A DNA stretch of 34,021 nucleotides from Macrostomum lignano. Taxonomy: Eukaryota. Below are positions 4,401 through 33,252 of the stretch, one piece after another (the stretch's first letter is position 1; each line of letters opens with the position of its first letter). The translations under genes and the position numbers were made by a program. The stretch spans positions 1 to 34,021 of the forward strand of contig NIVC01003247.1 of assembly GCA_002269645.1 (NCBI GenBank), read 5' to 3'. Below the pieces are notes generated by a model that saw nothing but the letters and a program-made list of their open reading frames with translations, searched no databases and was not told the DNA's origin.

Positions 4401-7400
4401 GCTGGTTAGACTGTTGAAACAGAAGGAAAGAAATATTGAGTGTAGCATCTGGACTAACTATCAGTCATGGACATCTAGGTAATAAAATTGGGATTGAACA
4501 CCAATCATTCAAGGACATCTAGCAAACCAAATTCGGATTCGACACTAACCATTATTCAAGGACATCTGACAAATCATTTCGGACTGGACATAGACCTAAG
4601 TGAAATTCTTCTCTAGTCTCAAAGCCATCTGACAAATAAGAGCTGGACTGGAAAATGATCAACATTCATTAGAATTTGTTTCTCACTATTCACAAGGACA
4701 TCTATCTAGTAGAAACTTGGACTAGCGTCTGCAAAAAACCTTGAACAATATTAGTAATTATGTATAATTATGTAGGCAACAGAAGTGCATCTAGAAAATG
4801 CCACAGATATAGAAGCTCCACATGGCGCTATGAAAAGAAACTACTTCCGTATTAAAAAGGATATCCGCATATATTTAGCCGGCTAAACAGACAAATTTAC
4901 CGTGTTGTCTCGGACAGCTCCCGGCAGGGGTCGTTGGGATAAAACCGGATCGCCAGGAACAGCTGACAGGACTTTTCCCCAACCAGGTCGGACAGACCGC
5001 CACCTGCAGGGGATCCGGCAGAGGGGGGGGTGGAGGCGATGAGCAAATTGAGACAACAGAATGGGAAGTCTGGCCCCATTCCAAATAACGAATGCGGCAG
5101 GGTATAAGAAATGGATGCATGGGGAAGCGAGAAGGGCAGACAAACATCAGGGCGAGAGAGTCCCTCCATTAAACTGGGACTCTTTGGGATTTTAAACTGG
5201 TTTGAAGCAATAAGCATGGAGCCACATCGCACGGTGCAGCCATCCTGAAATCATTATTTAATGAGATACTCTCAAGAGGTGACGGCGGAGAAACACCCAG
5301 AAACACAGAAATGCGGCATCAAGGAAGCCAAGAAGGTGGCCGCATCAGACTGGTTGCTACAGTCAAAAGCCCGCACAGTTTAGCTAAAAAATCATTGCCT
5401 CGCTTTTTTAAAACGAAAAAGCCGCGCGGAACTTCTTCTATTAGAAGAGGAAATTTAAGGAAATTGGACCAAAGTGATCGGAACAAGCAGAAAACGGATG
5501 GCCAGAAGAGTGAGTGTTTCCATTCTTAGACAGCTAACGCAGGAATTCGAGCTCAATTCTCTTCAAATAAGCGCGCAGATTGCTCCTCGCCGCTGCAAAA
5601 ACCAATTTCCAAGTCTTGGCGCAAAAGCAGCCCAAAACTGGCTGCTGAAAACTTATGACTGAGAATAGGAAACAAATCCATTTCCCCTAGACAGGCCAGA
5701 GTCTGGCTATATTTGGGAACGTGTTTAAACCCGTCTTTTTTATCTCAAAGCTAAGAAGCTTTCAATAACTATAAAAGCAAAAGATAAAAAGCCGCAACAC
5801 GGATGCTAAGGATGTTGCTTTTAGAAGAGCCAAAAATGACGTGGAAATTAATGTCGTCTTCCACCTCCACCGAAAAGCAGAGACACCTAAGAGAAACAAC
5901 CATTCTAAAAGTAATTAACTCTCTTACTGAACTGCATTGACCCCTGTCTGTACTACCCCAAGCCTTGCATTGACCCCTGTCTGTACTACCCCAAGCCTTG
6001 CATTGACCCCTGTCTGTACTACCCCAAGCCTTGCATTGACCCCTGTCTGTACTACCCCAAGCCTTGCATTGACCCCTGTCTGTACTACCCCAAGCCTTGC
6101 ATTGACCCCTGTCTGTACTGGGCAAAGCCTTGCATTGACCCCTGTCTGTACTGCGCGAAGCCTTGCATTGACCCCTGTCTGTACTGGGCGAAGCCTTGCA
6201 TTGACCCCTGTCTGTACTACCCCAAGCCTTGCATTGACCCCTGTCTGTACTGAGCAAAGCCTTGCATTGACCCCTGTCTGTACTGGGCAAAGCCTTGCAT
6301 TGAACCCTGTCTGCACTGGGCGAAGCCTTGGATTGACCCCTGTCTGTACTGCGCGAAGCCTTGCATTGACCCCTGTCTGTACTGGGCGAAGCCTTGCATT
6401 GACCCCTGTCTGTACTGGGCGAAGCCTTGCATTGATCGCTGTATGTACTGGGCGAAGCCTTGCATTGACCCCTGTCTGTACTGGGCGAAGCCTTGCATTG
6501 ACCCCTGTCTGTACTGAGCCAAGCGTTGCCATGACCTCCCTTGTAGTGGCTCGTACCAATTTCCTTTACCCTAACTATGAAGCAATAAATTCAGGAAATG
6601 AACGTTTCCGAAAAGCCAGCCAAACGTGGCGGAACTGCAACACCCCGATAGAGTTGCCAAATCGCAAATAGACGGATTTTCAGAAAAACACCGTGAAAGA
6701 AAGAACCCAATGTACGTTGCTGAAAACGACACAATAGACGGAAAACTTACGACAGCATTTAACTAAAGAGTGGACACTCTTGCGAACGTTGACCCATTGC
6801 TGAAATTTGGGAAAGGGTTTGGACAGAGTTTACATGTGATTTCAGAGACACAGCAGACTTTTAGGTGCAAAAACTCACCAGAGTCTTCCTCGAGTCCTGG
6901 TATCTCAGGCCAAAGAACTGCTGCTCGGGCACGCCGATGGAGTTCAGTACAGCGCGGAGCAGATCCTGGCCCTTGTGGTTGCCCTGCGAAACGGGGAAGG
7001 CAGCGGGAACCACAAAAAATGACTGCCAGCCCAACCCTTACACTAACCCTAACCTAATCTTCGGCAGTCCAATGTCAGGTGCCCGAGTCAGCGATGGTTA
7101 AATTAGTAAAAGCGATACTTATAGTTATAATAGACTGTATGGTCATCGCGGATGAAGGAATAGAATGGATTGCTAATCTATAGTCATCGCGGATGAAGGA
7201 ATAGAATGGATTGCTAATCTATAGTCATCGCGGATGAAGGAATAGAATGGATTGCTAATCTATAGCCATCATTATTGAAGGAATAGAATGGATTGCTAAT
7301 CTATAGCCATCATTATTGAAGGAATAGAATGGATTGCTAATCTATAGCCATCATTATTGAAGGAATAGAATGGATTGCTAATCTATAGCCATCATTATTG

Positions 7401-10400
7401 AAGGAATAGAATGGATTGCTAATCTATAGCCATCGCGGATGAAGGAATAGAATGGATTGCTAATCTATAGCCATCGCGGATGAAGGAATAGAATGGATTG
7501 CTAATCTATAGCCATCATTATTGAAGGAATAGAATGGATTGCTAATTATCTATAGCCATCGCGGATGAAGGAATAGAATGGGTTGCTAATCTATAGCCAT
7601 CGCGGATGAAGGAATAGAATGGGTTGCTAATCTATAGCCATCACGGATGAAGGAATAGAATGGATTGCTAATCTATAGTCTCATCACGGATGAAGGAATA
7701 TAATGGATTGCTAATCTATAGCCATCAGGGATGAAGGAATAGAATGGATTGCTAATTTATAGCCATCGCGGATGAAGGAATAGAATGGATTGATAATCTA
7801 TAGCCATCAGGGATGAAGGAATAGAATGGATTGCTAATCTATAGTCATCGCGGATGAAGGAATAGAATGGGTTGCTAATCTATAGTCTCATCACGGATGA
7901 AGGAATATAATGGATTGCTTATCTATAGCCATCGCGGATGAAGGAATAGAATGGATTGCTAATCTATAGCCATCAGGGATGAAGGAATAGAATGGATTGC
8001 TAATCTATAGTCATCGCGGATGAAGGAATAGAATGGATTGCTAATCTATAGCCATCGCGGATGAAGGAATAGAATGGATTGCTAATCTATAGCCATCAGG
8101 GATGAAGGAATAGAATGGATTGCTAATCTATAGTCATCGCGGATGAAGGAATAGAATGGATTGCTAATCTATAGTCTCATCACGGATGAAGGAATATAAT
8201 GGATTGCTTATCTATAGCCATCGCGGATGAAGGAATAGAATGGATTGCTAATCTATAGTCCCATCACAGATGAAGGAATAGAATGGATTGCTAATCTATA
8301 GCCATCGCGGATGAAGGAATAGAATGGATTGCTAATCTATAGCCATCGCGGATGAAGGAATAGAATGGATTGCTAATCTATAGCCATCAGGGATGAAGGA
8401 ATAGAATGGATTGCTAATCTATAGTCCCATCACAGATGAAGGAATAGAATGGATTGCTAATCTATAGTCATCGCGGATGAAGGAATAGAATGGATTGCTA
8501 ATCTATAGCCATCGCGGATGAAGGAATAGAATGGATTGCTAATCTATAGCCATCAGGGATGAAGGAATAGAATGGATTGCTAATCTATAGCCATCGCGGA
8601 TGAAGGAATAGAATGGATTGCTAATCTATAGCCATCAGGGATGAAGGAATAGAATGGATTGCTAATCTATAGTCATCGCGGATGAAGGAATATAATGGAT
8701 TGCTAATCTATAGTCCCATCACAGATGAAGGAATAGAATGGATTGCTAATCTATAGTCATCGCGGATGAAGGAATAGAATGGATTGCTAATCTATAGTCA
8801 TCGCGGATGAAGGAATAGAATGGGTTGCTAATCTATAGTCCCATCACAGATGAAGGAATAGAATGGATTGCTAATCTATAGTCATCGCGGATGAAGGAAT
8901 AGAATGGATTGCTAATCTATAGTCATCGCGGATGAAGGAATAGAATGGATTGCTAATCTATAGCCATCGCGGATGAAGGAATAGAATGGATTGCTAATCT
9001 ATAGTCATCGCGGATGAAGGAATAGAATGGATTGCTAATCTATAGTCCCATCACAGATGAAGGAATAGAATGGATTGCTAATCTATAGCCATCGCGGATG
9101 AAGGAATAGAATGGATTGCTAATCTATAGTCCCATCACAGATGAAGGAATAGAATGGATTGCTAATCTATAGTCATCGCGGATGAAGGAATAGAATGGAT
9201 TGCTAATCTATAGCCATCACGGATGAAGGAATAGAATGGATTGCTAATCTATGGTCCCATCACGGATGAAGGAATAGAATGGATTGCTAATCTATAGCCA
9301 TCATTATTGAAGGAATAGAATGGATTGCTAATCTATAGCCATCGCGGATGAAGGAACAGAATGGATTGCTAATCTATAGCCATCACGGATGAAGGAACAG
9401 AATGGATTGCAGACAGGCCCAAGCTCAAGCAGAAAGTACACCAGCTATCTGTAATGACGTGAAGCGACACCTGGCGGAGGGGGTTGAAAATTCAATCACT
9501 CTCAGGCAGGCTGACAGACCTAAGTGAAACAGGTGATTTTTGCTCCGTAAACGCGGGGTTTAAAAATGCAGCCAGCCCAGGCAGCTCACGGATGCGGCAG
9601 GTGACAGGCGGATCAACGCCGCGCACATCCGCGATCTGCGACAGCTCAGTTGCTATGCGGGAATGAGATGCAGCTAGCGGGGAGGCTGGGAGTTCCAGCT
9701 CAAGCCGCCCGTGACCAGCTGCAATAGGGGCGCTACAATTCCATGTGCGCGGTAACATTTTTGGGACTCGTGCATGGAGATTGGTTTCGGTTTTGCTGAG
9801 CAATTCTTGCCTGAGTGCCAACTCAAGCCAGATTGTACAGAACTCACCAACAATACCATTAGCAATTTCAGTCTTCGCATTAAGGGACCGTCTTTACAGG
9901 TTGTAGGCTAGTGAGGGGGTTTTAGCTTAGTTATGGGTGGTAGCCTTATTATGGGTGGTAGCCTAGTTATGGGTGGTAGCCTAATTATGGGTGGTAGCCT
10001 AGTTATGGGTGGTAGCCTAATTATGGGTGGTAGCCTAGTTTTGGGTGGTAGCCTAGTGAGGGGGTTGTGGCCTAGTGATGGGGTTGTAGCCTATTGGTCA
10101 AAGCGTCGGACTCACGACCTAAAGGTGGTTAGGGGTTCGATTCCCGATCCACTCGGAAAAATTTTTGTCCTTGAGCAAGACACTGAGCTCTACATTGCTT
10201 CAGTTCACCCAGCTGTAAAATGGGTGCCAGCATTAGCTGGGGTAATTGAGGCTGTGTGTGGCGACCCTTCCTGTGTAATTGGGGCAGCTGTAATTAATTA
10301 TTATTATTATTCTTACAGCTCGTACGAGTAGGAACTGGCCCAGATCGTACAGAAATTTATAAAAATCTAGTTTGCATTAGGACAGCACAATGTCGATCCC

Positions 10401-12886
10401 GCTAAAAGTGCAAATTTAGTTTGCAAATTAACAGAAGAATGAAGCCACCGTGGATAAAATAATTAAATTAACAAGTCGCAAACAATGGCTTCATCACAAC
10501 CAGGGGAACAGGCAATTCAGCAAGTGTAAAATTAGCATTATTCATATGAAAACAGAGAAATGCACGACAGGGTTGAAGAGTGGAGAGAAAGGAAAGAGTG
10601 GAAACCAATTGATTCTTAATTCAACTGCTGTAGACATGCAGTTGCAGTCTATTCTATATTTTTCTTTTTTGCTTACACAAGCCACTGCTATGCTCGCACT
10701 GTCTATGGGAACAAAAACCATGGGAAGAGACGAGGGGGAGTCAAGACTAACGCCTGGTGATATTAATCTTATTAAAATGATATCTAAACCTTGTACATTG
10801 CACACACAGTGCTGAGCATTTCTGGGCCAGCCTCCCAGATCCTCAGTTGCTGGGCCAGCCTCCCAGATCCTCAGTTGCTGGGCCAGCCTCCCAGATCCTC
10901 AGTTGCTGGGCCAGCCTCCCAGATCCTCAGTTGCTGGGCCAGCCTCCCAGATCCTCAGTTGCTGGGCCAGCCTCCCAGATCCTCAGTTGCTGGGCCAGCC
11001 TCCCAGAGTGTCAGTTGCTGGGCCAGCCTCCCAGATCCTGTTGCTGGGCCAGCCTCCCAGATCCTCAGTTGCTGGGCCAGCCTCCCAGATCCTCAGTTCA
11101 CAGATCCTCGCGCGTAAAGCCTTCATTCTCTCAGCCTTTTTAACGCTTCATGGGCTTTCCCCAAAGCCAAATTATGCACCAGTGTAGCCATATAATCTAT
11201 TTAATAAGCGCTTACTTTCTTCGATGCGAGCTGCAAACAGGATCTCCAGGCCTGTACTCGCAGCACACAATAGCCGTTGCATCCGCCGTGAAATTATTCT
11301 ATTTTTCTATTTTTCGCCTTTACGAATTTCTGCCATTCAGCTCGCAGTGAATTGAATAATGGCTTCCATGTAGCTTAAAGAATAACTGCGAGGATTCGGC
11401 AGCTATCTGCCCAGAAATGCGCGTTTCTTCTCTGCAGGCGGCGGCTTGTCTTTTTTGATTAGACTGCTACTGTCTGAATTGGCGATTCGTTAACATAAAC
11501 CATGGGAAGAGAGGAGGAGGGAGTCAAGACTAACGCCTGGTGATATTAATCGTTATTATAATAATATCAATAGACATTGTACATTGCACACACAGTGCTG
11601 GATCCAGATCTTTACTTGCTGGGGCAGCAATTTCTCGTAAAAGTGAAAAGCCTCGGGTCTTGCCGTTTGCCGGAAAAGGCACTGCTGCCCTGGTCCTGAT
11701 ACTAAATAAATATTATAAAATAATATTCGAAGGAGGGCTGCGGGCACCATGGCAACGCCTTCGGCGATATCGTCGCACTACCAACGCTGAATCAGTTCTG
11801 TCCACTCAGCTGGCTCCTGAGCACACACAAGTTCGCCAATACTGTACTCAGGCACAGCACTCATACACAGGCTCTCACAGGGTGTACATCGGCCCTTGTG
11901 ACTTCTGATCTTCAGGCGTGTGCACTCTCTGTGCCTTGGGGGCTTGGCCATCACGGGGGTGTGACTCGCACGAACAAAATGAATGTGTTTGCGCACGGAA
12001 TCTGCTCTGCCGCCCCCACCTTTCCCAACGCAAATTAAGCAACGGCAGGCGAGACCGCACGGTCTCAAAGTCGGTGACACAGTGCTGCGGCGCCGACTAA
12101 ATCCGCTCAAGGGCGAGACTCCGTTCGAGTGGGCACCCTGGCTGGTCGAGAAGGTCAAGGGCGACTCGATGACCATTCGGCAGGGCGCCAGAGTTTGCAG
12201 GCGGCACTGCACTGACCTGAAGCGGGTAGCGCCGGGTACTGAGCCCGATTTTCCTGTCGGGGAGCCCGCACCTCCGATCCTACAAGCTGCAGGGAGCGAA
12301 CCCGCGACCTCTCCAATTGCGCTGCGACCACACCCCCGAGAGGCCAAGGTGAGAGTGAACTATAGGGTTTAACTATAACTCGCGCTTGGCAGACTGACGC
12401 TAATATCTTTGGGTGCGCTTTGATTTTGCTTTTGCATCGCGAGCTTGCGAAAAGATTGTCACTCTCTGGCTAATGCACTATAATCAGTAACATTTTGTTG
12501 AATAATGTTTCTTTGCAATATTTATTTGTGGTATCTTTCATTTTTTAAAAAACCTTTTGCAGTTGCACTTTTAATCCGATATGAGGAGAGATGTAGTGTA
12601 CGCTCTGCGCGGTAATAATGTACGGCTGGCTTGGTCGATGAATTCGTAGCAATATTCTTATTACGCAATACTCTCGTGCCTATAAATATATTGAATTGAG
12701 CAGTCGGCTCAGTTAAGTACATCGTTTTTCTCTCGCCAAAACTAAATAGCTAGTCTGAGTCATTACAATCCCATCCCGATCCTAGCTAAAACTTTTTCCC
12801 ACACTCTACTCACGGGCAGGGAGAAGGCCTTCTTATTCCCGTCCAACAGTTGGACGTAGAAGTCCACCTCTCGGGTGGAGGCGGCG
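1401..12886 (-). CDS. FERM-domain (band 4.1/ERM superfamily) protein, spliced; 5' and 3' ends unresolved
   Basis: Exons (minus): 12886-12814, 6983-6879, 6799-6751, 5003-4901, 4308-4211, 3323-3209, 3038-2951, 2872-2778, 1467-1401. All are AG/GT-bounded with matching phases (793 nt, ~264 aa). The translation carries ordered FERM motifs: FYVQLLDGNKKAFSLP, KGQDLL..FFGLRYQD, QWVNVRK, LFLAIRFYPNDP, RLQVFLQTIQDIQSG, RLAALMLQSYHGDFD, AEYQFLSHVKWLEGYG, FFWPRIKK. Compare band 4.1 motifs VKFYPPDP, LQLRQDI, AWPKILKIS. Confidence 0.92.
1499..2724. repeat. 22-bp minisatellite (gcaatgcttgtgtttaagctag / ...aaccaag), ~55 copies, fills FERM intron 1468-2777
   Basis: Direct tandem copies; the first part alternates two variants as a ~45-bp dimer. 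Confidence 0.95.
3389..4110. repeat. 31-bp minisatellite (ctcacagctacatctagggggagatcctgaa), ~23 copies, FERM intron 3324-4210
   Basis: Period 31 seen directly (e.g. 3421 vs 3452). Confidence 0.95.
4460..4730. repeat. Decayed ~45-50-bp tandem repeat (caaggacatct... core)
   Basis: Recurring ggacatct/gccatct and ggact/ggatt motifs at irregular ~45-50 bp spacing. Confidence 0.55.
5933..6530. repeat. 33-bp minisatellite (gccttgcattgacccctgtctgtactaccccaa), ~18 copies, FERM intron 5004-6750
   Basis: Period 33; it produces the 11-aa repeat ORFs in the track. Confidence 0.95.
7135..9410. repeat. 41-bp minisatellite (atctatagccatcgcggatgaaggaatagaatggattgcta), ~55 copies, with 43-bp variants
   Basis: Direct tandem copies over 2.3 kb. 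Confidence 0.95.
9800..9899 (-). ncRNA. Spliced-leader (SL) RNA-like gene or pseudogene; leader 9899-9857 ending in ATG, followed by GT
   Basis: Minus strand reads CTGTAAAGACGGTCCCTTAATGCGAAGACTGAAATTGCTAATG|GTATTG. It matches the M. lignano SL as I recall it (..CCGTAAAGACGGTCTCTTACTGCGAAGACTCAATTTATTGCATG) at about 26/28 nt in the core. It ends in the terminal ATG typical of flatworm SLs, followed by a GT donor and two hairpins. No clear Sm site is visible. Confidence 0.65.
9900..10079 (+). repeat. 18-19-bp tandem array (tagcctagttatgggtgg), ~10 units, derived from the SINE 5' end/A-box
   Basis: Units grade into the SINE head (ggttgtggcctagtgatg -> ggggttgtagcctattgg). Confidence 0.85.
10080..10311 (+). 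mobile_element. tRNA-derived CORE-type SINE, copy 1 (internally deleted)
   Basis: A-box tagcctattgg and B-box ggttcgattccc. MIR-core-like segment gtccttgagcaagacact...cttcagttcacccagctgtaaaatggg. (att)n tail. Homologous to 27224-27535. TSD tct(t)tacag at 9891-9899 and 10311-10318 encloses the SINE plus the upstream array. Confidence 0.88.
10715..11600 (+). repeat. Local direct duplication, 10715-10814 ~ 11497-11600
   Basis: Both copies share aaaccatgggaagag...ggagtcaagactaacgcctggtgatattaatc...ttgtacattgcacacacagtgctg. Confidence 0.9.
10822..11108. repeat. 28-bp minisatellite (gctgggccagcctcccagatcctcagtt), ~10 copies
   Basis: Direct tandem copies. Confidence 0.95.
11790..11950 (-). repeat. 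Dispersed hairpin-containing element, copy A (homologous to 28109-28290 and 28509-28810)
   Basis: Minus strand gccaagcccccaaggcacagagagtgcacacgcctgaagatcagaagtcacaagggccgatgtacaccctgtg aligns with gccaaccctcaaggcacacagagtgtacatgcctggcgattagaaagtcaaagggccagtgtacaccctgtg at 28510. Confidence 0.8.
12030..12372 (+). mobile_element. Ty3/Gypsy LTR-retrotransposon integrase C-terminal fragment
   Basis: ORF 11983-12372 contains KQRQARPHGLKVGDTVLRRR..KGETPFEWAPWLVEKVKGDSMTIRQGARVCRRHCTDLK. This resembles the integrase C-terminal (GPY/F, SH3-like) module of K02A2.6-like Gypsy pol. No RT, RNase H or LTR is seen. Confidence 0.7.
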
Positions 12887-13802
12887 CTAAATATGCTGCA
12901 CATTGTGACTTCCGCTGCCGAGCAAGTTTACAAGCTTTTTTAATTGCGGCGCAGTAGCACCATAAATTAATAAGTTAACAAACAGATAAATCTAAAATTC
13001 TATAACAGATTCTTTTCTACAGATAATTCTAATAACTGGAAAGGTTCCAGTTAAAACAAATTCAAATTTGAAATGAATCAGAACCTATGGAAAGTCTCAG
13101 CTTAAAAAAGGCCAGCTTCAAGGCGACAACCACATTTGAATCATATTCAACGATAGTTAGATCACGGGAGATTGATGCCCGCAGTTTTATAGTTGAACAG
13201 GACAATGAACTGGTATGCCACAACAATGCTAACGGGATGCAGAAGTCACAGTCATCATATGTGAACTCTCGCTAATCTCTCACCATAAGATAGGACACAC
13301 AAGATTTATATTCTAATTAACATTTTTACTTTCTTGTAACAAAATTCAACGCCAATTAATGTAATTTAGGCGTGTCGGCTTGCTGCAATTGGTGATTACA
13401 GGCACTGAAACAGTCACGGGGCAAGAGGCTCTGGCCTGTAATAAGGCCAGACTTATGCCCAGTAGCACATGGACGCGACGTGGTCCATTCTTCTAATTAA
13501 CGGAGTCACGCAAAATAAGATAAGGGAGAAAGAGGAGGGCGAGTTGTCAGGAATGCCTCGTGATGAGGCATAATAATGCGGCTAGTTTGTCATTTTCATT
13601 GCAGTGGGAAAATTCCTGCTCGCATCCCCATAATCAGCAGAATTTTCCGAGATTGGCGGGGCTTCAGAGACAAAAAACACAGCATTGATTGAATGAGCAC
13701 AATGCACACTGCACTGTGAATGCGATAGCTTGAAGATGTCTAACTCTGGTTATTGAATTTTGTGAGACAATGAAATTTCTGGTATTCTATAGAAGATTAC
13801 TA

Positions 13803-14875
13803 TGCGGGCACAGTGTGTGGGCACAGTGAATAGGGTAATGCGCGGGTACAGTGTGTAGGGGAATGCGGGCACAGTGAATAGGGTAATGTGCGGGTACAGT
13901 GTGCAGGGGAATGCGGGTACAGTGTGTAGGGGAATGCGGGCACAGTATGCAGGGGAATGCGGGCACAGTGTGTAGGGGAATTCGGACACAGTGTGTAGGA
14001 GAATGCGGGCACAGTGTGCAGGGGAATGCGGACACAGTGTGCAGGGGAATTCGGACACAGTGTGTAGGGGAATGCGGGCACAGTGTGTAGGGGAATGCGG
14101 GCACAGTGCGTAGGGGAATTCGGACACAGTGTGTAGGGGAATGCGGACACAGTGTGCAGGGGAATGCGGGTACAGTGCGTAGGGGAATTCGGACACAGTG
14201 TGTAGGGGAATGCGGACACAGTGTGCAGGGGAATGCGGGTACAGTGCGTAGGGGAATTCGGACACAGTGTGTAGGGGAATGCGGACACAGTGTGCAGGGG
14301 AATGCGGGTACAGTGCGTAGGGGAATTCGGACACAGTGTGCAGGGGAATGCGGGTACAGTGTGCAGGGGAATGCGGGTACAGTGCGTAGGGGAATTCGGA
14401 CACAGTGTGTAGGGGAATGCGGACACAGTGTGCAGGGGAATGCGGGTACAGTGCGTAGGGGAATTCGGACACAGTGTGTAGGGGAATGCGGACACAGTGT
14501 GCAGGGGAATGCAGGTACAGTGCGTAGGGGAATTCGGACACAGTGTGCAGGGGAATTCGGACACAGTGTGCAGGGGAATTCGGGCACAGTGTGCAGGGGA
14601 ATTCGGGCACAGTGTGCAGGGAATTCGGCACAGTGTGCAGGGGAATTCGGACACAGTGTGCAGGGGAATTCGGGCACAGTGTGCAGGGGAATTCGGGTAC
14701 AGTGTGCAGGGGAATTCGGACACAGTGTGCAGGGGAATTCGGACACAGTGTGCAGGGGAATTCGGACACAGTGTGCAGGGGAATTCGGACAGTGTGCAGG
14801 GGAATTCGGACACAGTGTGCAGGGGAATGCGGGCACAGTGTGCAGGGGAATTCGGGCACAGTGTGTAGGGGAATG
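13803..14875. repeat. 23-bp minisatellite (cacagtgtgcaggggaattcgga), ~46 copies
   Basis: Direct tandem copies; source of the overlapping repeat ORFs. Confidence 0.95.
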
Positions 14876-15880
14876 TTTAATCCATGACACCAAAAGGGGA
14901 TCAATCCCGTTTTATTTATCACAATTTCGCCCACCCTCTATGACGCCGAAGAACTGATTTGTCTAAAACACGTTTTCTTGATCATTTTAATAGCAAGGGT
15001 CACAAATCATAAATATAAATACGTATTAGCTTGCAGCCGAAGCTACTACCTTTTATTTTCTGAAAAAAACAATGTAAAAAGATGAAACAAGGATAATCTG
15101 TGGTGAAGTTAACTGTTACATCATTTGCGATCTGCTAGTATAGCGGCCATGCCATCTGCTTCAGTTGTCCATGGCTTCAATCACTCCCAGTATCAAAAAG
15201 TTGTTATATTATTATAAGAACTAAAAGCTGCGTGATCAGCGTAACAAGGAAATATCTGCATGACGACACGACCAGGTTAAGGACGGTGTACAAAGCTGTG
15301 TGCGGTACAAACGACAATAGATAATTCATGATAGGTTGGAATTGGGGTTAAAAATTTTACGAATGGTGCAGTTAAGATTACAGAATAAGTGCGAGTAGGC
15401 GCTGAGGCCACCGAAAACATTTCTTTTCAGTCTCGAATGTGACACATGTAACTTCAAACGTGGCCTTTTTTTACTGTGACTGGGGTGAAAGCCTAATAAC
15501 GTACTAAAAATAGTCGTCTGTGGTCTAAAGTCACCAAAAGTGACATAAGTAAAGCAAAATGAGGCAGCAGTTTGATCAGCTCAGACAAGAGAACCAAGAT
15601 CTACAACACCAAGAGTCATCACGCGATGCCTTACACAAGAATTTTAGAGCTCGACTGTTCAGTTTACGTTCTGTTTAGTTTATTCTCTTTAGTGTTGAAG
15701 GTGCTCTCTGACATATACTGAGATTCTACTGAGATTCTATCAATAGACGCGATTGGCCACATTTGAAATCACTTGTGGCACATTCGGGTTGAATAGATTT
15801 AGTTACTCTCACGTAATAAAGTACTTGTCTGAAGCGAGAGCATAGACAGACATTCAGTTCAGTGCTAGTCTGTTTAACAT

Positions 15881-27100: not shown

Positions 27101-27642
27101 AAAGTTTATCGCAACAAAACAATTGCCTCGTGTCTTCAAAGCGCCGATGAAGTGATAAAAATAGACAGAACTTTTTGCGATGGGGAAGGCTACACAGTAC
27201 TCAGATGTAGAGCTTGAAGCAGTTGCCTAGTGGTTGTAGCCTAGTGGTTAGAGCGTCTGACTCACGACTGAAAGGTCGGGGGTTCGTTTCCCGATCCACT
27301 CGGAACAATCTGTGTCATTGAGCAAGATACTTTAACTCTGCATTGCTTCAGTTCACCCAGCTGTAAAATGGGTGCCAGCATTAGCTGGGGTAATTGAGGG
27401 TGTGTGGCGACCCCCAGTCCTTGGACTGAACAGCCGTACGCAGCCTTCAGATGCGCCGCGCAATAGCTGCGGCTGAGCTGTCGGTTGCACATCTGCCCAT
27501 TTGGGGCAGGTGTAATAAATAATAATAATAATATTAAGCAGTGAGCAATGGATGCCTAGCTGGAAATTAATTTTACATTCTGACCAACAAATAACAAAAT
27601 TTTTGTTTTGCAGGCGACATCCAGCCGTCCTGCGACCTTTGA
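21104..27642 (+). CDS. SPARC: SPARC/osteonectin (BM-40)-like secreted protein, 7 exons, ~247 aa
   Basis: Exons 21104-21179, 22201-22310, 22710-22878, 23971-24068, 24458-24567, 25578-25729, 27614-27642, with consistent phases. Signal peptide MASVPAVQSLLLLLLFLLLSLRGTA. Follistatin/Kazal module C..C...QEC....CICKRTC..VCTKKGFEYQSRCHFFRDQCLC..C..YSAC. EC domain YSSRLAAWL ... VLLPQDACIEAFLTGC ... CFRLREGDIQPSCDL*. This parallels FPxRMxDWL, PLIPMEHC..FF..C and the invertebrate C-terminal Cys. The exon 3 and exon 5 donors are less certain. Confidence 0.85.
21820..22109. mobile_element. MITE/foldback-like inverted repeat in SPARC intron 1
   Basis: Arms 21858-21917 and 22002-22076 (aaaattttaggaggcc..ccgtaaaaatacatta..ggagataggagattttcat and its reverse complement), plus outer agactactcaag / cttgagtagtct. 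Confidence 0.8.
22961..23492. mobile_element. MITE-like element with ~70-bp imperfect terminal inverted repeats in SPARC intron 3
   Basis: The left arm gtatcgcttttga..aaatgggaatttggacaatcaaaacgggacgccatagacattcaagccag is the reverse complement of 23417-23492, including an exact 23-bp stretch. Confidence 0.8.
23498..23572. repeat. (GAGAG)n polypurine microsatellite
   Basis: Direct reading. Confidence 0.9.
24200..24410. repeat. (GAGAG)n polypurine microsatellite in SPARC intron 4
   Basis: Direct reading. Confidence 0.92.
24806..25370. repeat. 63-bp minisatellite, ~9 copies, SPARC intron 5
   Basis: Period 63 (24871 vs 24934); gives the 21-aa repeat ORFs. Confidence 0.95.
25787..26842. repeat. 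26-27-bp G-rich minisatellite (gggagagtctgaggattagaggggtgg), ~40 copies, SPARC intron 6
   Basis: Direct tandem copies. Confidence 0.95.
27224..27535 (+). mobile_element. tRNA-derived CORE-type SINE, copy 2 (longer, likely full-length), 7-bp TSD aagcagt
   Basis: A-box tagcctagtgg (duplicated), B-box ggttcgtttccc, core gtcattgagcaagatact..ttcagttcacccagctgtaaaatggg, (aat)n tail. TSD at 27217-27223 and 27536-27542. Confidence 0.9.

Positions 27643-29103: not shown

Positions 29104-33252
<4,149 letters not shown>

Follow-up and report, generated by a model that had tools for sequence, protein, structure and literature searches.

The analysed window is the entire contig NIVC01003247.1 (34,021 bp) of the Macrostomum lignano assembly GCA_002269645.1. 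Its minus strand carries a gene for a FERM-domain protein, in which exon 1 runs from the ATG over positions 12814–12903 and is followed by the donor GTGAGT (12813–12808), and exon 2 (6879–6983) is preceded by the acceptor AG (6985–6984). The two exons join in phase, and the joined peptide matches Pfam FERM_N (E, 1.2e-8) with the match crossing the junction; two word-index protein searches with the FERM exon peptides returned nothing, and an exact look-up of two local ORFs gave no record. A neighboring intronless GPCR ORF matches M. lignano BOX15_Mlig023911g3 with 100% identity. Intron 1 of the FERM gene (12813–6984, 5.8 kb) harbors an element resembling the exon of a spliced-leader (SL) RNA gene, lying in the sense orientation between the exons at 12903–12814 and 6983–6879, just as had been proposed from the sequence beforehand. 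The intron is otherwise packed with satellites.

The SL-like exon occupies 9857–9899 on the minus strand, corresponding to nt 2–44 of a 44-nt copy that is restored when an inserted element is removed (see below), and terminates in an ATG (9859–9857). Read from 9899 to 9857, the minus strand is CTGTAAAGACGGTCCCTTAATGCGAAGACTGAAATTGCTAATG, with the variant leader 3' end ...GAAGACTGAAATTGCTAATG and GT directly following at 9856–9855. For M. lignano, a 35-nt SL with the donor GTAAG has been described (PMC8629364), the published SL having the same sequence in three Macrostomum species, and the canonical exon is invariant across these three named species and the two SL RNA genes recovered in the present study. 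The 28-nt SL core GTAAAGACGGTCTCTTACTGCGAAGACT aligns to 9897–9870 of the minus strand with two mismatches (26/28), a match obtained in none of 100 shuffles and expected zero times by chance. The best alignment of the whole exon with the published 45-nt SL contains four substitutions and two indels (a 3-nt deletion and a 2-nt insertion, giving 44 nt versus 45 nt), with the same letter in 38 of 47 aligned columns and an identity of 93% in the 5' two-thirds. Judged by these alignments, the resemblance of the locus to the M. lignano SL exon is a real homology, far beyond chance. The original prediction thus gave the letters, the coordinates, the published leader, and the extent of the core match correctly; it had also described a 3' third diverged at constant length up to the terminal ATG, of which the ATG stands, whereas the length has changed through the two indels.

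Close to its 5' end, the exon is interrupted by a tRNA-derived SINE of ~410 bp (9900–10311, plus strand) inserted in the opposite orientation. On the plus strand, the SINE starts at 9900 with the head-like sequence GGTTGTAGGCTAGTGA and continues with a tandem array in which its own 5' head recurs in 18-bp units (9923–10093, about nine copies), a tRNA-like head from 10080 with an A box TAGCCTATTGG (10087–10097) and a B box GGTTCGATTCC (10134–10144), a body, and an AT-rich (ATT)n tail (~10291–10311). Rfam gave a weak tRNA match over the head (10080–10145), and no intact tRNA was detected by ARAGORN. A second copy with 88% identity is located at 27232–27413; the A and B boxes, the simple-repeat tail, the target-site duplication, and the occurrence in several copies are those of a tRNA-derived SINE. 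The target duplication comprises 8 bp (7/8 identical), the plus-strand CTT-ACAG at 10312–10318 corresponding to CTTTACAG at 9892–9899. On the minus strand, the segment 10312–10319 holds nt 1 of the SL-like exon (G 10319) and the upstream copy of the duplication (CTGTAAG, 10318–10312). Deletion of 9900–10311 together with one copy of the duplication yields ...CGTACGA joined to GCTGTAAAGACGG, and the 5' end so restored is identical to the published SL 5' end save for one C-to-T change, confirming the earlier proposal on this point. The SINE thus breaks the exon after nt 7–8 and cuts it off from its former upstream DNA. Site specificity of the SINE for SL exons was considered and dropped, because the copy at 27232–27413 lies in an unrelated context outside any SL-like sequence and provides no evidence for it.

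Another contig of the assembly, NIVC01004400.1, is a redundant copy of this region, with an identity of 93–98% overall and ~2% substitutions locally, and contains the identical SL-like segment with the same SINE at the same site. Since the fragment and the SINE are common to both contigs, both events predate the contig split. Over the 44-nt exon and the 43 nt beyond it, the two contigs do not differ at all, compared with ~2% in the flanks, a contrast that is not significant (about 1.8 differences would be expected). A third GPCR-bearing contig stops 1 kb short of the region.

As a reference for what should follow the exon in an SL RNA gene, we used two canonical genes recovered with a degenerate pattern spanning the canonical and variant cores, which, when run against public DNA, hit one metagenome contig and one contig of a bacterial MAG; viral contigs gave no match, and neither the variant leader string nor the SL RNA gene sequence was found in the literature. 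One gene lies at 615–723 of the metagenome contig Ga0302322_100095745 (L002), which also codes for an animal Na/K-ATPase beta chain, and the other at 1589–1697 of JAGQZA010000190.1 (L004), which is assigned to a Flavobacteriaceae MAG, evidently as contaminating flatworm DNA. Each gene is ~109 nt long and begins with a perfect 45-nt exon followed by the donor GTAAGACACCG, which folds back to pair with the exon; this is followed by a stem-loop GATCCA...TGGATC, the single-stranded (A/G)UAUUUUUAGCA, and a stem-loop AGCCC...GGGCU, so that there are three stem-loops with the single-stranded AUAUUUUUAG between stems II and III. The fold z-scores of the two genes are -3.3 and -4.6, and their differences fall mostly in loops. 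The SL RNA gene of M. lignano has been described with a matching architecture, as a 109-bp unit of which the deduplicated genome has eight copies (Ustyantsev and Berezikov 2021, PMC8629364). The two genes show that the whole 109-nt Macrostomum-type RNA, beyond the leader alone, is strongly conserved. All intron comparisons below refer to these two genes of Macrostomum type and to the published verbal description of the M. lignano gene.

The sequence that follows the ATG at the locus has little in common with this reference. The 14 nt after the ATG (9843–9856, minus strand) are GTATTGTTGGTGAG, which begins with GT and makes a poor donor: the locus reads ATG and then GTATTG, with T and T at positions +4 and +5, versus the M. 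lignano cis donor motif GT[G/A]AG and the SL RNA donor GTAAG (PMC8629364), so that GT is present as GTATT but a consensus 5' splice site after the AUG is not. Compared with the canonical GTAAGACACCGGTGA, these 14 nt have only GTA and GGTGA in common, and the post-ATG sequence, in the window as in the duplicate contig, showed no significant similarity to the canonical SL RNA introns under several scoring schemes (p about 0.5–0.9). The 100 nt upstream likewise had no significant match in the DNA preceding the canonical genes, which is a weak test as the L002 and L004 upstreams are also not significantly alike. Two small hairpins had been pointed out downstream of the exon, and their inverted-repeat arms are indeed found on the minus strand, the first as attgt (9854–9850) and acaat (9836–9832), and the second, gcttgagt-tggc-actcaggc (9809–9828), with arms at 9828–9821 and 9816–9809 and the loop tggc. 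The fold z-scores of the locus are -0.96 and -0.07, no better than those of shuffled sequence. The duplicate contig has 14 extra nt, CTTGA[TTTGTGCCTTTGGC]GTTGGCAC, within the second hairpin (between 9823 and 9822 of the window), and an indel at this place argues against constraint on that hairpin, to judge from the two copies. The window locus contains no Sm-type U-rich site, in keeping with the reservation attached to the original prediction.

A covariance model trained on the two canonical genes scored 134–138 bits on these genes themselves and 11 bits (E, 1.9) at 9900–9808 of the window, lower than two unrelated hits in the window, and the copy in the duplicate contig was not listed. In the covariance alignment, broken or non-standard pairs make up about half of stem I, and this stem, in which the exon pairs with the 5' splice site, is not formed at the locus any more than stem-loops II and III are. 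Rfam scans of the window, at the gathering threshold and at permissive E-values, returned nothing SL-like; these scans are uninformative, because they missed the canonical gene too. In a control run, no model of Rfam 15 detected the canonical Macrostomum SL RNA.

These results bear directly on whether the locus is a functional gene of a second SL RNA class, whose variant RNA would supply some mRNAs with the leader ...GACUGAAAUUGCUAAUG. Such a gene would be expected to retain the terminal AUG followed by GU, as the exon does, and the high identity of the 5' two-thirds, together with the precedent of several SL classes in other flatworms, for example planarian SL1 to SL3 (cited in PMC8629364), would be in line with it. 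In addition, the duplicate contig has GAUUUGUG, resembling a U1-type Sm site, 37 nt past the donor. This stretch, however, lies in a predicted stem rather than in a single-stranded region and within the 14-nt indel, and is deleted in the window. In both contigs, the SINE, inserted after nt 7, parts nt 1–7 and any upstream promoter from the rest, so that there is no intact transcription unit contiguous with an upstream promoter; the pairing of stem I has been lost with no compensatory changes, the covariance score is at noise level, and the fold and the donor GTATT, not GT[A/G]AG, depart from those of an SL RNA. Moreover, transcriptome-based studies and published surveys describe one M. lignano SL. 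We therefore consider a functional second class very unlikely. The same very low probability applies to the related idea that the locus, or its better-preserved duplicate in NIVC01004400.1 with GAUUUGUG, is or recently was an SL2-like leader gene serving a minor mRNA set that was missed by surveys relying on the exact canonical 35-mer. Neither a distinct trans-splicing leader nor an interference with host splicing, both of which had been envisaged, is supported, given the exon split by the SINE, the off-consensus donor, and the missing Sm site. Of the two readings put forward in the original prediction, an SL pseudogene is borne out by the exon homology, the intronic sense position, and the restored 5' end, whereas a second SL class is disfavored by the absence of SL RNA likeness beyond the exon; what had been called an isolated SL paralogue is better described as an exon-only fragment.

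How the fragment may have arrived is suggested by a direct repeat of 15 bp around it, with the consensus TTCTGTAC[G/A]ATCTGG. The upstream arm TTCTGTACGATCTGG (10340–10354, minus strand) and the downstream arm TTCTGTACAATCTGG (9828–9842, minus strand), which closes 14 nt past the ATG, are identical at 14 of 15 positions; when the 80-nt flanks were shuffled 2000 times, 14/15 was reached once (p about 5e-4). With the SINE removed, the arms bracket 78 nt, consisting of 20 nt, the 44-nt exon, and 14 nt. Short direct repeats around a copy are as found with truncated snRNA-type retropseudogenes or inserted fragments, and the repeat-bracketed 78 nt suggest a truncated inserted fragment, as a reading of the local sequence. 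In such a copy, RNA nt 1 would come right after the repeat and the 3' end would be A-rich; at the locus, 20 unexplained nt separate the upstream repeat from SL nt 1, and no A-rich tail precedes the downstream repeat. Because of these 20 extra 5' nt and the missing A-tail, the mechanism of insertion is uncertain. The 60 nt upstream were also considered as a second degenerate SL unit, as in a tandem array, and this was rejected (p, 0.26–0.5).

The repeat is also relevant to the possibility that a complete SL RNA gene paralogue, derived from a DNA-level duplication, once stood here and later had its 3' two-thirds scrambled or replaced, instead of having been truncated on arrival. This history would account for the GTA and GGTGA at near-canonical offsets after the ATG, and for the U-rich and GCC-UUU-GGC motifs lying in the duplicate contig roughly at the positions of the Sm site and stem III. 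These motif likenesses are, however, not significant in any of five scoring schemes, and an exon with ~90% identity beside unrecognizable sequence is not expected from a uniform neutral decay of the whole gene; furthermore, the downstream arm of the 15-bp direct repeat ends the segment 14 nt past the ATG. A formerly complete paralogue is accordingly unlikely, at a level only slightly above that given to a second SL class. An alignment by eye of the duplicate contig to the Sm site and stem III (GAUUUGUG with GUAUUUUUAG, and GCCUUUGGC with GCCCUUUCAUGGGC) was rejected, with permutation p of 0.5–0.7 in the five schemes.

Homology that ends at the exon end, as it would in a spliced product, could also point to a retrocopy of an SL-trans-spliced mRNA, that is, a recycled cDNA in which the GT after the ATG is coincidental. 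About 30% of M. lignano genes are trans-spliced (PMC8629364), and the copy extends to SL nt 1, both of which are compatible with this origin. It is opposed by the GTA after the ATG, which is what the unspliced gene has (a chance of about 1/64), by the lack of a poly(A) tract between 9856 and the satellite at 9410, and by the 20 extra nt that separate the SL 5' end from the upstream direct repeat. The long downstream ORF at 9893–9495 has no Pfam match, and a search of 1.84 billion representatives gave it no real relative and one match, to a repeat-inflated bacterial adhesin. In addition, the two contigs differ by frame-shifting indels. The parent exon, poly(A), and target duplication of a processed pseudogene are not assembled here, and the protein-level searches returned no parent. 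We regard a retrocopy as improbable, to about the same degree as the formerly complete paralogue.

Altogether, we conclude, with a probability of roughly 0.85, that the locus is a non-functional M. lignano SL relic, consisting of a copy of the SL exon and at most ~14 nt of the following sequence. With the exon split by the SINE and the rest of the SL RNA gene missing, both in sequence and in structure, the most likely reading is that of an inert relic, as opposed to a second SL; uniform decay of a whole gene would not be expected to leave an exon with ~90% identity beside unrecognizable sequence. In the proposed sequence of events, an SL exon fragment would have become lodged in intron 1 of the FERM-domain gene, probably as a short, 3'-truncated inserted piece whose target duplication would be the 15-bp direct repeat; a short truncated insertion is probable because the 78-nt segment is bracketed by this repeat. 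The fragment may then have drifted, acquiring four substitutions and two small indels relative to an exon that shows no other variation in the genus. The tRNA-derived SINE would subsequently have cut the exon after nt 7–8 in the opposite orientation, creating the 8-bp target duplication, with all of these steps being presumably older than the split of the two redundant contigs. The exon homology, the SINE with its target duplication, the missing SL RNA intron sequence and structure, the sense position in the intron, and the state shared with a second contig are direct observations, whereas the fragment insertion, the order of these events, and a lack of expression at the locus are inferred.

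The result mainly concerns annotation: where M. lignano introns contain SL-like strings, neither SL RNA genes nor trans-splice sites should be annotated from them, and the present locus is a worked example. It may also serve as a small dated marker, in which the SL fragment and then the SINE are older than the duplication or haplotype split of NIVC01003247.1 and NIVC01004400.1. A functional second SL, if true, would alter the single-SL picture for Macrostomorpha. As a by-product, the analysis yielded two complete canonical SL RNA genes of Macrostomum type.

The relic can be compared with several known systems. The human U1, U2, and U3 'class III' pseudogenes are 3'-truncated snRNA retropseudogenes with flanking direct repeats of 16–19 bp; the locus is similar in containing a 5' part of the RNA with a 3' cut-off and a direct repeat of similar length (15 bp), but differs in having 20 extra nt before the first base and no A-rich tail, and the shared mechanism is putative. 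In dinoflagellate 'mRNA recycling', relic SLs derive from retroposed trans-spliced mRNAs, and the locus is likewise a genomic SL exon without the SL RNA intron; unlike those relics, it has GTA after the leader as in an unspliced gene, and no parent mRNA or poly(A) was found in the searches described above. Retroelements inside SL exons are known from the SL-exon-specific non-LTR retrotransposons SLACS, CZAR, and CRE of trypanosomatids and NeSL-1 of C. elegans; the locus resembles these in having a retroelement inside an SL exon near its 5' end, but the element is a tRNA-derived SINE, whose second copy (27232–27413) has no SL-like surroundings. With the canonical M. lignano SL RNA gene (PMC8629364), the locus shares the recognizable 45-nt leader and the ATG followed by GT, whereas it is without the GTAAG donor, the exon/5' splice-site stem, stem-loops II and III, and the single-stranded Sm-like site, and differs further in its SINE-interrupted exon, its solitary copy, and its intronic position. 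In parasitic flatworms, SL-RNA pseudogenes with no conserved donor and negligible usage have been reported from Schistosoma bovis, S. haematobium, and Fasciola hepatica (PMC12582326), and the M. lignano locus, too, is a divergent SL-like sequence with a degraded donor that is read as non-functional. Those are whole SL-RNA-like genes with measured transcriptomic usage, while here there is the exon only, known from DNA; the locus is a further example of an already known kind of object, the SL-derived relic.

At the 5' end of the tRNA-derived SINE (window 9900-10311, plus strand) that splits the SL-like exon, positions 9923-10093 hold about nine 18-bp tandem copies of the element's own 5' head (GGGTGGTAGCCTA...), the copy number of which differs between the window contig and L001 (NIVC01004400.1, a redundant copy of the window region). 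At the opposite end, an inverted repeat, CAGCTGTAA...(ATT)n...TTACAGCT (10281-10320, plus strand), covers the SINE tail together with the neighbouring target duplication; it may be coincidental, and it makes the 3' boundary of the SINE slightly less sharp.

Satellites predominate in FERM intron 1 and its surroundings (window 7144-9410, 10822-11098, 5933-6536, and about 13800-14900), the arrays comprising 55 copies of a 41-bp unit, 10 of a 28-bp unit, 18 of a 33-bp unit, and a ~23-bp array, and because of them long spurious ORFs run in several frames. Gene annotation is inconsistent between the redundant contigs: a 200-aa GPCR fragment is the sole gene called in window 5881-26483 of NIVC01003247.1, whereas one 655-residue gene is annotated across the counterpart in NIVC01004400.1 (L001:9297-16464). 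Elsewhere in the window, guanylate cyclase catalytic-domain exons (31751-33179, minus strand; Pfam, 1.8e-30) bracket a very long run of trinucleotide repeats, ~0.9 kb in extent, which reads as poly-L, poly-T or poly-Y depending on the frame.

Macrostomum-type SL RNA genes were found on two contigs outside the M. lignano assembly. The metagenome contig Ga0302322_100095745 (L002) carries a canonical one at 615-723 and an intronless Na/K-ATPase beta-chain ORF at 1774-2922 (Pfam, 9.8e-50), and its positions 154-191 match the SINE core over 39 nt. The source sample seems to have contained an uncharacterised Macrostomum-like flatworm. The other gene, a perfect one, lies at 1589-1697 of JAGQZA010000190.1 (L004), recorded as 'MAG: Flavobacteriaceae bacterium HKST-UBA79', and almost certainly entered the Flavobacteriaceae MAG bin as a flatworm contaminant. 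No family in Rfam 15 recognised the canonical Macrostomum SL RNA within L004:1500-1800, and the sequences from these two contigs would allow a model of it to be made.
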